Of a stretch of 52,257 bases of DNA, positions 13,301-28,300 are shown one piece after another. The notes under the pieces were generated by a model that was given only the letters and a program-made list of their open reading frames with translations, had not been told where the DNA came from and did not search any database. The DNA is from Macrostomum lignano (taxonomy: Eukaryota): the NCBI GenBank assembly GCA_002269645.1, contig NIVC01004271.1, positions 1-52,257 of the forward strand, written 5' to 3'. The translations under genes and the position numbers were made by a program. Numbering within the stretch: the first letter of the stretch is position 1; each line of letters starts with the position of its first letter.

Positions 13301-16300
13301 AAAAGTGCCGCCGTCTATGGGGGGGCGGATGGAGAAAAAGTGCCGCCGTCTATGGGGGGGGGCGGATGGAGAAAAAGTGCCGCCGTCTATGGGGGGGGCG
13401 GATGGAGGAAAAGTGCCGCCGTCTATGGGGGGGGGGCGGATGGAGGAAAAGTGCCGCCTTCTGTGGGAGGGGGGCGGATGGAGGAAAAGTGCCGCCTTCT
13501 GGGGGGGGGGCGGATGAAGGAGAAGTGGCGCCATCTATGGGGGGGCGGATGAAGGAGAAGTGGCGCCATCTATGGGGGGGGAGGCGGATGAAGGAGAAGT
13601 GGCGCCATCTATGGGGGGGGCGGATGAAGGAGAAGTGGCACCTTCTAGGCGAGGATCGGGGAGCGTTGAACATTTCTTAAACCTTGCCATAATTTAACCC
13701 ACAGATCCAGAGCATAATGTCGGTCACTGGTTGACAGATGATAAAATTTTATAAATTAGCCATTTTTTTCGCTAATGTCTTCACACAGTTTCGCACAAAT
13801 AAAGAAGTCTGGCTCTAGAAAAAAATAGACTGCCAACCTAAATCCAATCCCTAACCTAAACCATAATCCTAAGCCTAAATATAAGCAGTAGCACAGCAAT
13901 GAATTCAAGTCTTACTCTTAATTATAACAACAACAAAGAAATAATGCATCTTTTCTGCTACGCAAAAACTTCAAAACTATACCGTGAAATATAAATAACG
14001 TAGTGTTTCTTTTATAAGGGGGTGCTCGACTGCTGGCATATGAAACGCATAGCATAAACAACAAAAAAGTTGTTGCAAAAGAAATCATACACAAGCGAAA
14101 AAGTGGCGCCGGCCTTTTAAGAGCCTGGGAAAGCCGCATCAAAACCCGGATTGTTTATACTTTGTGGAAGCCTCTTGCACAATATTTCTCTGAAGGCTAT
14201 AGCATAACAACGTGCTTGACCATCCTATAGTCTAAGACAGCAGCAAGCAGAGAGGCCTCATAAATGGTCCAGTTGCTAAGGCGCGCTTTGCTTCCCAACC
14301 CACTTGCCTAAAAGTAATCAGAAACTGCATCCCGCCAAGTGGAAACTGATCCCGACAGGCTCTTATAGTCGAGTCAAAAGCTTTGAAAGAGAATTTCAAG
14401 CGCTGGAGGACCTTCAGCTCTGTGAAATTTATATATTTGCTGCAGATTGCAGATGACACATATACATAGCATTAGCACTGCATAGCAACAAAGAAATTGC
14501 AACAAAAGCTAAAACTGCGTCCCAAAAGAAAGATAGATGGAAGACAGAACCACCTGTAACTGTATCACTGTTATCAAGGACTCTAAATCAGAGCTCCACT
14601 GGATTGGAAACCAACAATATGGTGATAACTAATAAGCAATATCGTTTACATTTAACATGACTCGTTTTGCTTTGACTTGGTTGCACTATTTACAGAGTCG
14701 ATTATTCAGCCAGGGAGTTTTTCCGTGCGGGGGATGGTCGGCTGAAGATAGATAGATAGATAGATAGATAGATAGATAGATAGATAGATAGACAGATAGA
14801 TAGATAGATAGATAGATAGACAGATAGATAGATAGATAGATAGATAGATAGATAGATAGATAGATAGATAGATAGATAGATAGATAGATAGATAGATAGA
14901 TAGATAGATAGATAGATAGATAGATAGATAGACAGATAGATATATAGATAGATAGATAGATAGATAGATAGATAGATAGATAGATAGATAGATAGATAGA
15001 TAGACAGAAGATAGATAGACAGATAGATAGATGTCTCGTTTTGGCACCTCCTGATTCACTAGAATGAAGGCAAGTAAAAGATAGTATTTGGGCCACTTTA
15101 ATGCATGTAGCTACCTAAAATATCCTAATATTTTGTCTGTTATGAGGTTCATGACCCCCTATCCCTATGGAGTCACATCCTGCCAACGCCCTGCAGTTGC
15201 AGTCTACGTGATACTCTCAGGGAGTCCATGTAGTATAAAAGAATCATACGGACGGGAAGAACGGAAACATAAAAACCCACCAGCCGAACTGCATCTGATC
15301 TCTCATTGGCCAGCAGACGATGCGCCGGAACCAATGGGAATGTTTCCACTTTGATGGAAGTCATATGCAGGCAGATTACACACCTGACGCATCGCATATA
15401 TGAATGCAATTAATATTCACCTGGTCGCTGATGAGGCGTAGCCAACGTAACAATCAGCGGCACTCGGCCTCGATCGAAGTCTTCCAACGTCATCGCGTGA
15501 CGAGCAACCAGACCGCCCTACAAATTTGAATAAGATCATGTATCGATTTGACAATAGCAAGACAGCCAGTGCAGGTATTTACGATGCCAGCAGCAAGGCC
15601 AAGTTGTCGAAAAGTGGCGGTGGAGTCGACAGGCGAAAAGTAAGTTAATTCTTTCCTTTAGAACTTTTTCAGACTTTCTGATTTTTTTAAAGCCAGAGGT
15701 TTTTTAGATATTTGTTGGTTAATTGCCATTTTGAATGCTAAAAACGAATTTGAAATGATAGAAGCGCCATTTTGAATCCAAAAGCGCCATTTTGAACCCA
15801 AAAGCGCCATATTGTTCCCAAAAACGCCATATTAAACCCAAAAACGCCATTTTGTATTCAAACGCGCCATTAGAATTCTTCGTTTTGAAAACTCTTATAG
15901 TATAAACGCCATATTTAAGAACTGAGCCAAAAAACATGTTAAACTTATGACTTTCATTTGAACTCGCTTCAAGAGCTTCTTTTGGGAGCAGAAAAAAAGC
16001 TAAACCTGTCAAGCGTATATTTAAAAAAGAAATTTTCCATATCTGTTCATCTCTCTTTTTTCCTGACTTCATATTCCACTTCAACTGTGGTTACCTGGCT
16101 ACACTGGCTTTGTCCATCTATTTAAACGTTCACTTCCTTCCGATCATCGGTCAAGACCGAATTCTCAAAGGAAAAGAACGGCTTCCATGTCACGTCTAAA
16201 CCAGCGGCTGACTGCACAGTTTATTTAGTTTTGTCTTGCCATGCGCGGACCAGACAGCCAGAGAGAGAGAGAGAGGGAGAAACACAATCCGAAACCTTGT

Positions 16301-25300: not shown

Positions 25301-28300
25301 TGACAACTTGATTGCCGACAGTGTAACGCACAATAACTGTTTCTCCTCAGTTAAAAATCACAGAAAGTATTGCTGCAACCAGTTTAACTTGGCTTTACAA
25401 CTTTTAGCCAAGACTTAGGACCATTGTTAACGGAACCCATTTTGTGGAAATCGTTTATTTTCAACGATAACTTTAATTTTCAGCAAAGTAATCTTGGCTT
25501 AGCTTATGAACAAATTTAATGTACATTAAAAGCTTCATTTCGCCTTTAATGTCACAAGCCAGTATTTGCCTTTGCTTGCACCTGTATTTTAGCTTGAGTA
25601 TAGAAAATTGACAAGATTAGTCAGTTCAGAACTCACCATTGAATGCCCGACCAAAACGATTGAAAACTTTGCGCGACTTGAATACAGCGATTCAATGTGG
25701 TCAACCACGTGGCGAACAAATTCTGAGCAAAGGAATTATTGTTATTGTAATCAAATTTGACCCTATTTCTAGCCATCTATTCTGTTCACTTGGTTTTTAA
25801 ATTTATAAAAAATAAATATATAAATGTAAACACAATTATTTATTTGGCTTACACTAACTATACATTGAAATACAGACTTACCACTTTGTCGGTACAAAAA
25901 TGGACCGTGAAGAGCAGAAAATTCCTGAAATGTTAATTGCTTTGCTTTTTAGACTACTGAACTGATCTGGTCAGTAGGATGTACGGGATTTATTTAGCCT
26001 GTAGAAAAATTACTCGATTGCAGTAGTACACTTACACTATTCAAGTCAACAGCAAAGCAATCGAATCTGGTCTTTGTGCCAAGCGTTTTCCTCATCTGGA
26101 TTGCTACAGAAGCCAGCGAGCGAACCTGCTTGTGGCTGCCATCATTGCCAGGTATGAATAGCAATGGCGAGCCTTCAAAGACGCTGCGACTCACTGGCTC
26201 AGAGTGCCTGGCAGTTCGAAATGGGAAATAACAAGTCAGATGCAAATTCAAGAGATTGAAAAACAAAGACCCAGCAATGAATATAATATAGGCAAATATG
26301 AAGAACTTACCCTTCTGTATAAACAAACAAATTATACTCAGGAAACTTTCTTCTTACAGATGCTGGCAGAGTGACAGGCTAAAAGGTAAAAGTTATGTAA
26401 TGTCAATTCTTCAAAAGACAAGCTAAGATATTAAAACATAAGCCATCTTTTAAACAAAACATTTTAAATATTCTACTAGTGAAATTAAAAAATATGATGA
26501 TAAAGTCTAGATATATATAATAAATATATTTAAAAACCTTAGATAAATCAATACAAACATGCTATTACAAAAGCCTGTAATAATTGGGATACTGATACTT
26601 AACCTTTAAGGTGTTTTTTGTTTCTTAAGCCTTAAGCCTTACTAAAAAGATGTTAGTTTTGCAATTGGCCAATTGCTATATGTGATATAGTGCATCATAC
26701 AGCTTTAAAGCCTATAACAAAGACTTAGATAAAAAGATAGATAGATAGACACAGACAGACCATTTTCAGTATATAGGATAGGTCCTAGCACAGCTAAGTA
26801 ATGCAAGTGCCACTGAGAGTAAAAACGAAGCAAATATGCTTAAATAAGAAATAATTATATATAATGGCTAAAATACTTGGGTATCTTAGCCAATTGCCAT
26901 GCATGCAAATTTGCATATACTACTATAGGTGCCATTGTGTCATATAGACATTTTAGGACTTGTCTAGCCTAATAAGTCTATTGATAATGTAGCACCTATA
27001 AGAGGGGCAATAAATAAGTCAGGTGGTCACCTCCTTTCCTTAGAAATTTTAAAAAATTAGAGCAACATTATATAAAACCTTATAATAATGCATATATTAA
27101 AAAAACTATAGTGGTCACCCCATAGAAGGATAAAGGATAGTCACCTGGGGGGTGGATGGGAAAAGGTTACCTAAGGGATACAGCACTCTGCCTCCTGCCA
27201 ATACTGCCATTTAATATCTTAATGATATAATAATAATATCTATTAATTATAAATATATAAGATATTAAAATTTCTTTTCTTTTGTCTATTAATTGTCTAT
27301 ATGAGTCAATGCATTTTGTACTTCATGTTGTATCTTCAGGTTTATTTTATTGGAATATAAAAACAAGATTAATAATTTACTATACAAAATAATTATTATT
27401 CATCAATTTTTGCAAAATAGAGCAGTATATAGTGCATTGAGTCACATAGACAATTCATAGATTTTTGGGTTATAGATTAGGTTATAGATTTTTTGGATTT
27501 TTGGGCATAATGCCTCTTTGCATAGCATAGGTCCTAATGTAGTAGGCCTATAATATAGCATAGGCCCTTATGCAAAAATTGATAAATATTAATCATTTTC
27601 TTACTTGGGTGCAACCTAGGGATTCACCCAGCCATTTCTATTGGCAACACACACATGTAAGTTGCTATTGGATGGAATAGTCACATGATTGCTCTCAGCC
27701 AATAGCAACTTATAATGTGTGTGTTGCCAATAGAAACAGCGCATGACCAAGACCGCCATATACCAAGACCGCCACAGCTCTTACTGACTATTGGAATTGA
27801 GGGGAAGCTACCAATCTTCCAGCATTGCTATTGGTTATGATGAGTTGTGGAATTAGATGAGGAGGAAGTGTCCCAAGATTGGTCACTAATAAGATGAATA
27901 AGTGGCCCAAAATGATTGCAAGTCAACCAGGGCAATTTTAACAATTCAAATTAAATGAAAAAAACAAGGAGCCTGGCTTACCACCTACCTGGCCAGGCTG
28001 GCCTGCTCACCAGTTCCTCTCTCGTGGCCTTGTCTTGCTGGCTCTCCCCATCTCACCCCTCCTCAGCACCATCCAATAACATGGCAAGCTAAATTCCTCC
28101 CTCCTAGCTCCCCCAAGTGTGGCAGTCTTGGTGTATGGCGGTCTTGGTCCTACACCATAGAAACGGCTGAATGATTCCTAAGGTTGCGCATGTATGATCA
28201 TTTTGTATAGTAAATTTGTCCAAAGATCAATGGGGAGGACAGAGACAAAAAGTTTCGTAGAGCAATGCAATCTATAGTTAGCATTCTTTTTCAAAATTAA

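Follow-up and report, generated by a model that had tools for sequence, protein, structure and literature searches.

The locus described here lies in the 52,257-nucleotide contig NIVC01004271.1 of the flatworm Macrostomum lignano (assembly GCA_002269645.1, Mlig_3_7), the whole of which is referred to as the window. With moderate confidence, we interpret it as an ordinary opposite-strand nested gene pair, in which an intact gene of the Dmrt2/Dmrt11E class lies on the plus strand inside intron 5 of PGAP1 (GPI inositol-deacylase), an ancient intron of a minus-strand host gene, and in which the nested gene likely starts at the ATG at position 15538. All Dmrt coding exons fell within this intron on the strand opposite to the host, and only the left limit of the gene hinges on its putative exon 1. 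An earlier note on this DNA had claimed both the nesting and an obligatory overlap of antisense exons; the nesting stood, whereas the exon overlap is likely but unproven.

The PGAP1 host and its nested Dmrt gene

An approximate model of the PGAP1 N-terminus on the minus strand matched the annotated M. lignano protein BOX15_Mlig029025g2 (P0121) with 93% identity and 100% coverage, the 7% shortfall being put down to the approximate query model. The host model contained the Pfam family PGAP1 (PF07819; E = 2.2e-64), and these two matches bore out the identification of the host made in the earlier note. Features shared with PGAP1/Bst1 proteins were the Pfam domain, an alpha/beta-hydrolase domain with the GxSxG nucleophile motif (here the GHSMGG nucleophile elbow, divided between exons 5 and 6), an N-terminal transmembrane segment, and exon boundaries found in oyster and dragonfly. 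The annotated protein was placed at 9369-28965 on the minus strand; its coding range, 9372-28965, encodes a truncated copy of 377 amino acids (aa).

Exact mapping of the annotated peptide placed seven coding exons on the minus strand: exon 1 at 28965-28828, exon 2 at 26378-about 26310, exon 3 at about 26207-26036, exon 4 at 25924-25882, exon 5 at 25722-25637, exon 6 at 15517-15421, and exon 7 from about 9898 downward. Exon 5 starts after CAG and ends with GTC GGG CAT TCA ATG|GTGAGT (encoding GHSM), and the 97-nt exon 6, comprising 32 residues, begins with TAG|GGC GGT CTG (GGLVAR) and ends before GTGAAT. The host intron between them thus spans 15518-25636 on the minus strand (10,119 bp, phase 0, GT-AG) and splits the GHSM|GG motif. 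Both the limits of this intron and its position within the catalytic motif agreed with the earlier note. The join of exons 5 and 6 was identical in the annotated protein and in its full-length twin, BOX15_Mlig029025g1 (P0225), and the same boundary was present in the oyster and dragonfly genes described below. Because the NCBI annotation of the assembly was built from a genome-guided transcriptome (PMC5730564), the join also has indirect RNA support.

A six-frame scan revealed a single DM-domain signature, CARCRNH, on the plus strand (17001-17210). The gene model built around it comprised four plus-strand exons between 15538 and 25292, totaling 816 nt (271 codons and a stop codon), with GT-AG introns throughout and the donors GTAAGT, GTAAGT, and GTGAGT in order. 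The putative exon 1 (15538-15639; 34 codons) would supply the ATG at 15538-15540 and a phase-0 GTAAGT donor. Exon 2 (17046-17209) encodes the DM domain and ends in QVALR/R at a phase-2 GTAAGT donor; exon 3 (24413-24567; RHQTNRDEE...SKQVLH/S) ends at a phase-1 GTGAGT donor; and exon 4 (24898-25292) carries the post-DM and C-terminal motifs and the stop codon at 25290-25292. The coding coordinates proposed earlier were all located in the sequence and the frame closed at 271 aa, with exon 1 being a prediction only.

Pfam analysis of the model detected a full DM domain (E = 2e-21; profile positions 1-47 of 47), which was the only family found at E <= 0.001; no DMA domain was found. The DMA domain is a mark of the Dmrt3/4/5 or Dmrt93B/99B group, with the caveat that several spiralian proteins labeled Dmrt2, including Lingula P0025, have a precomputed DMA match. 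The top full-length relatives, with 35-50% identity over at most 97% of the query, were Dmrt11E/Dmrt2 proteins of Diptera, other arthropods, rotifers, and Lingula. In a 17-sequence alignment, the zinc ligands of the intertwined CCHC and HCCC sites (C42, C45, H48, H57, C61, C66, C68, and C71) were invariant, as were K136, L146, Q150, R180, R182, R184, F187, A188, D189, and L192 beyond the DM domain and F262, S263, and I267 in the C-terminal FSVESIL. The subfamily motifs QK..Y..LR.LQ, ERIRKRRxFAD, and C-terminal FS[VI]E.I, all outside the DM domain, were present in the model. The conserved C-terminal motif of the Dmrt2/11E group, FS[VI]E[SA]I[IL] (at 25266-25289 in the window), presumably resembles the Groucho-binding engrailed-homology-1 motif, FSIxxIL. 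In the alignment, the position of intron 2 (after QVALR/R) was common to Lingula Dmrt2 and Brachionus, and that of intron 3 (just before Y(K/R)xRL) to Lingula Dmrt2.

Judged by its motifs, best matches, and intron positions rather than by a formal phylogeny, the nested gene belongs to the Dmrt2/Dmrt11E class, the assignment that the earlier note had given to this opposite-strand guest. It resembles the subfamily in the DM domain and zinc ligands, in the post-DM and C-terminal motifs, and in the Lingula intron positions, and its length is similar to that of members in Diptera (about 250-280 aa). A polyglutamine stretch sets it apart from its relatives, as does TW in place of RW following the fourth zinc ligand.

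The cluster of the annotated PGAP1 protein includes the 942-aa twin mentioned above, which is encoded on contig NIVC01002437.1 (173,804 bp). Compared with positions 15000-26500 of the window, this twin contig showed 99.1-99.9% identity and carried the same Dmrt gene, retroelement, and host exons. The six exons compared (Dmrt exons 1-4 and PGAP1 exons 5 and 6) were base-for-base identical. Outside the retroelement, about 32 difference events (single-nucleotide polymorphisms and insertions or deletions) separated the two contigs, none of them in approximately 1 kb of exons; about 4.7 exon events were expected from the exon share of the aligned length, and the probability of finding none was estimated at about 0.006. 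This lack of differences fits constraint on the exons, the copies being too alike to judge exon 1 alone: at the local intron density, about 0.8 events would be expected in its 102 bp, so that a contig approximately 99% identical is uninformative for this exon. A third PGAP1 fragment contained only the 3' half of the gene and no intron 5.

The twin contig also bears on the notion that the layout is an assembly or annotation artefact, with the two halves of PGAP1 wrongly joined across an unrelated locus. The quality of the left end of the window could be read in that sense, since left of about 10 kb its identity to the twin contig is 90-94%, with dozens of insertions and deletions, compared with 99-99.9% further right. 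Given that the same layout occurs on two separate contigs that agree closely over 15000-26500, and that PGAP1 of oyster and dragonfly has these two exons in direct succession, divided at the same point, such a join is scarcely credible, and mis-assembly was rejected on these grounds.

The low-identity left end itself suggests either that the end of the contig was poorly polished or that the copy is degenerating. At about 9372-9380, in PGAP1 exon 7 (minus strand), the window carries a 4-bp deletion and two substitutions relative to the twin contig, which result in a frameshift and a stop codon. The window copy of PGAP1 ends at 377 aa from the 4-bp deletion, whereas the twin protein continues to 942 aa, and the exons downstream of the truncation are degraded or poorly assembled in the window.

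Dmrt start codon, transcript ends, and expression

The start codon must lie outside Dmrt exon 2, because that exon contains no in-frame ATG upstream of the DM domain. Among the ATG-initiated open reading frames (ORFs) that end in phase 0 at a GT between 12000 and 17040, the best-scoring one was 15538-15639, and the donor that follows it at 15640 was the sole GTRAGT within 15518-17045. An exon 1 candidate of at least 30 codons arose by chance in 1.7% of 5,000 dinucleotide shuffles of 15518-17045. The GC content of the putative exon (0.49) was like that of exons 2-4 (0.50-0.54) and unlike that of intron 1 (0.41). From these sequence properties, we judge exon 1 to be real with somewhat more confidence than doubt, and the ATG at 15538 to be the most likely start of Dmrt translation. 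Within intron 1, several copies of a motif of approximately 20 bp (AAAAGCGCCATTTTGAAYCC-like) were observed at 15760-15870, and the twin contig contained one extra unit of it (a 20-bp indel at 15768).

The ATG at 15538-15540 is 18 nt from the host acceptor AG (15518-15519), as had been claimed, and 20 nt from PGAP1 exon 6. The first 15 or so codons of the putative exon lie opposite the last approximately 60 nt of the host intron, the region of its branch point and polypyrimidine tract. The earlier note had placed exon 1 opposite these signals; the position was correct, whereas the exon itself is an ab initio candidate only. A real exon 1 would set about 45 nt of Dmrt coding sequence against the host 3' splice-site signals, which would make this a small doubly constrained region. 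With a gap of only 20 nt, a real exon 1 also means that the transcription start site, the promoter, or an outron must cross PGAP1 exon 6; in that case, we infer that the head of Dmrt overlaps this exon and the 3' splice-site region of the host by a short stretch, of about 100 nt at most. Without a real exon 1, PGAP1 exon 6 is not overlapped. The antisense exon overlap was therefore not established as obligatory: it hinges on exon 1, and an ATG supplied by a spliced leader (SL) could start the protein at exon 2.

Several points weigh against the favored explanation of an intact nested gene starting at ATG 15538. Exon 1 had no homology support, the N-terminus being unconserved in the family across the 17 aligned sequences, and Lingula Dmrt2 had no intron at the position between exons 1 and 2; a real exon 1 would give the gene one intron more than its Dmrt2/Dmrt11E relatives, immediately ahead of the DM domain. 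An ATG 20 nt from an antisense exon leaves no intronic room for a conventional promoter or 5' untranslated region (UTR), which is a reason to doubt exon 1. The twin contig, being about 99% identical to the window, does not provide an independent evolutionary sample. Finally, the Dmrt gene was missing from the transcript-based NCBI annotation of both contigs, and 5.8 billion public proteins held none identical or near-identical to the Dmrt model; its expression is thus unproven.

Absence of homology for exon 1 is also one of the points in favor of a transcript that starts at exon 2, with an SL trans-spliced at 17045|17046 supplying the ATG for a protein of about 238 aa. The promoter would then lie within 15640-17045, and the gene would be wholly intronic and would not overlap PGAP1 exon 6. 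The M. lignano SL (CGGTCTCTTACTGCGAAGACTCAATTTATTGCATG; 35 nt) ends in ATG (...TTGCATG) (PMC8629364), and trans-splicing affects 30-39% of the genes of this species (PMC8629364, PMC5730564). Exon 2 opens in phase 0, so that an SL-derived ATG would be in frame (M-DYARTPKC), and Dmrt11E of Drosophila busckii, which has only 8 residues before RTPK, indicates that a near-absent N-terminus is tolerated. The acceptor at exon 2 (CAAG), however, is unlike the enriched trans-splice motif [T/C]TNCAG, and a 34-codon ATG-initiated ORF with a perfect phase-matched GTAAGT donor is improbable by chance, as the shuffles indicated. Both the SL RNA sequence and the [T/C]TNCAG motif were sought at two candidate acceptors, and neither was found. 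We consider this exon 2 start a minority possibility, rather less probable than a start at ATG 15538.

The second candidate acceptor is the AG at 15533-15534, which enters into an arrangement of interleaved genes. Here, either one or more non-coding Dmrt 5' exons would lie below 15421, in PGAP1 intron 6, or a long outron would be trans-spliced at that AG. In either case, PGAP1 exon 6 would fall within an intron or outron of Dmrt, without any necessary overlap of the mature mRNAs. The AG is 3 nt before the ATG, an SL-derived ATG joined there would be in frame (M-I-M-Y-R-F...), and a TATA-like sequence, CATATATGAA, is located at 15395-15404, just past PGAP1 exon 6. The AG has neither a polypyrimidine tract nor the YTNCAG motif, an upstream Dmrt exon has no support, and intron 6 is mostly minisatellite; taken together, these features render interleaving unlikely. 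Arrays of a 30-bp unit (26 copies), a 36-bp unit (43 copies), and an (AGAT)72 microsatellite make up much of PGAP1 intron 6 (9918-10706, 12118-13646, and 14746-15032), and the region that would house the Dmrt promoter therefore consists mostly of repeats.

An overlap of the Dmrt promoter or first exon with PGAP1 exon 6 and with the host branch point and acceptor could in principle have functional consequences, in that transcription of either gene would interfere with the other and expression of the two would be mutually exclusive in particular cell types of the hermaphrodite. For example, transcription of Dmrt or its antisense RNA might block the 3' splice site of the host; skipping of the 97-nt exon 6 would then break the deacylase frame. 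Such effects, whether transcriptional interference or antisense masking of the host 3' splice site, are speculation, and we regard mutual exclusion as highly improbable.

At the other end of the gene, the sole canonical plus-strand poly(A) signal in the interval from the Dmrt stop codon to host exon 5 was ATTAAA at 25525-25530, about 110 nt before that exon. AATAAA at 25811-25816 (plus strand) lies beyond exon 5, in PGAP1 intron 4, and its use would make the Dmrt mRNA antisense to the whole of PGAP1 exon 5. The positions of both signals agreed with the earlier note, including the point that an end at ATTAAA stays inside the intron. The simpler expectation is that ATTAAA is used, in which case the Dmrt mRNA would most likely stop about 85 nt before it reaches host exon 5.

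In this region, the annotated genes of the window contig were only PGAP1, the retrotransposon polyprotein, and a 79-aa ORF, and the twin contig had the same three. A search of the same 5.8 billion proteins for Dmrt itself or for a near relative from Macrostomum yielded no full-length match above 50% identity, and fragments from Logan and ENA that were checked for a Macrostomum Dmrt proved to be insect-like. Nothing relevant was found in the literature on Dmrt genes in Macrostomum or other flatworms. The omission of the gene from public gene sets is probably due to its hiding in an opposite-strand intron, and catalogues of M. lignano DM-domain genes would miss an intact Dmrt2/11E gene.

These absences, which concern the transcriptome-guided annotation of the two contigs and every public protein set searched, would also be expected of a silent copy, that is, a recently relocated and unexpressed gene that has had too little time to decay. 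Such a copy would not readily account for four intact exons with canonical splice sites, zinc ligands, and family motifs despite only 35-50% identity to other phyla, nor for the absence of exon differences against about 32 events elsewhere between the two copies. Moreover, assemblies of RNA sequencing data often lack developmental transcription factors whose expression is low. A silent copy is therefore very unlikely in our estimation, and the intact nested gene starting at ATG 15538 is retained as the preferred explanation.

The annotated 79-aa ORF, which had no Pfam match, is located at 17336-17575 on the minus strand, about 130 nt downstream of the DM exon, and the same holds for the twin contig. 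An assembled transcript may lie behind it, possibly one from Dmrt that is unspliced or was assigned to the wrong strand. Retention of Dmrt intron 2 would lead to an immediate stop (CGG TAA) and hence to a protein consisting of the DM domain only.

Age of the host intron and origin of the nesting

The GHSM|GG exon boundary was also present in PGAP1 of the pearl oyster Pinctada imbricata and the dragonfly Ladona fulva, and the Pinctada exon that follows GHSM is the same 32-residue exon (GGMIARALFT...ITQATSHQEP). The homologous introns measured 531 bp in Pinctada and 387 bp in Ladona, compared with 10,119 bp in M. lignano, and are too small to hold a gene. Since the intron position is ancient, the splitting of the GHSM|GG motif is unconnected with the nested gene. 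Synteny was compared in Lingula anatina, Adineta vaga, Brachionus calyciflorus, and D. busckii, none of which had a PGAP1 gene within 10 kb of Dmrt2/11E; the arrangement, whose conservation the earlier note had left to such a comparison, was thus not conserved. Because these four animals lack PGAP1 beside Dmrt2/11E and the homologous introns are small, the nesting appears to be derived somewhere on the line to Macrostomum and lineage-specific among the animals checked.

Two ancestral intron positions were kept in the Dmrt gene, which points to an arrival by rearrangement at the DNA level, not by retroposition; an origin as a retrocopy was ruled out on the same evidence.

About half of the present host intron is a Ty3/gypsy long terminal repeat (LTR) retrotransposon of 5,093 bp, located in Dmrt intron 2 on the minus strand (19076-24168). 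Its LTRs (19076-19274 and 23969-24168) are direct repeats of approximately 200 bp with TG...CA ends and 99-99.5% identity, and the element is flanked by a 5-bp target duplication, AACAT (19071-19075 and 24169-24173). The Pfam domains occurred in the order zf-CCHC, Asp_protease_2, RVT_1, RT_RNaseH, Integrase_H2C2, and rve, corresponding to gag-PR-RT-RNaseH-IN, the order of Ty3/gypsy elements. Without the element and the target duplication, the host intron measures approximately 5.0 kb (10.1 kb at present) and Dmrt intron 2 approximately 2.1 kb. The insertion is recent and later than the arrival of Dmrt. The earlier statement that Dmrt fills the intron almost end to end holds in that its coding span covers 96% of it, but 5,093 bp of this span is the retrotransposon. 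The recent element making up half of the intron, the ancient age of the GHSM|GG intron, and the most likely 3' end at ATTAAA had all been missed in the earlier note.

The window element carries about 165 bp (22217-22383, at the gag-PR/RT boundary) that are missing from the copy on the twin contig. The extra segment splits the window polyprotein into two ORFs, whereas the twin copy has one 1084-codon frame; the annotation appears to "splice out" this segment in the window element.

The most likely history of the locus is as follows. PGAP1 is transcribed on the minus strand, with its ancient phase-0 GHSM|GG intron spliced out; the Dmrt gene entered this intron through a DNA-level rearrangement; and the 5.1-kb Ty3/gypsy element then inserted into Dmrt intron 2, about doubling the host intron from approximately 5.0 to 10.1 kb. 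With translation from ATG 15538, the Dmrt transcription start site or promoter would have to be situated within PGAP1 exon 6 or past it, and the mRNA would most likely end after the ATTAAA at 25525. The locus shows how an ancient intron of less than a kilobase can grow, as a gene arrives and a retrotransposon lands inside that gene.

Comparison with known nested genes and other repeats of the window

In D. melanogaster, about 6% of the genes are intronic (PMC3786989), and in vertebrates the nesting of LRRTM genes within alpha-catenin genes has been conserved (PMC3933685). Like 2mit in an intron of tim2 in Drosophila and LRRTM genes in introns of alpha-catenin genes, the Dmrt gene is a whole intron-bearing gene in an opposite-strand host intron. 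Unlike in those pairs, its predicted ATG is 20 nt from a host exon, with the 5' end and promoter probably not inside the intron, and its pairing with PGAP1 was not found in the four other animals checked. Relative to oyster and dragonfly PGAP1, the host is distinguished by a GHSM|GG intron of 10.1 kb compared with 0.4-0.5 kb. If exon 1 is real, the pair would resemble head-overlapping cis-natural antisense pairs, with the Dmrt 5' UTR or promoter over host exon 6 and its acceptor, a likeness of layout only. Nested genes and intronic retroelements have been reported to cause host intron retention and cryptic polyadenylation (PMC3192792).

The locus is a further example of the opposite-strand nested genes common in animals, and the general understanding of such genes is unchanged by it. 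Its particulars are an unannotated developmental transcription factor as guest, an ancient host intron in a catalytic motif, a retroelement within a guest intron within a host intron, and an ATG close to the host acceptor.

A scan of the whole window against Rfam gave 0 matches. In the right 20 kb (31957-52056), upstream of PGAP1, at least 10 different minisatellite arrays with units of 18-56 bp were present. At the left, a 14-bp satellite, TCAGCTCCGCTCCC, fills the PGAP1 intron after exon 7 with about 535 copies over 7.6 kb (1502-9095), and its counterpart on the twin contig measures about 0.67 kb.

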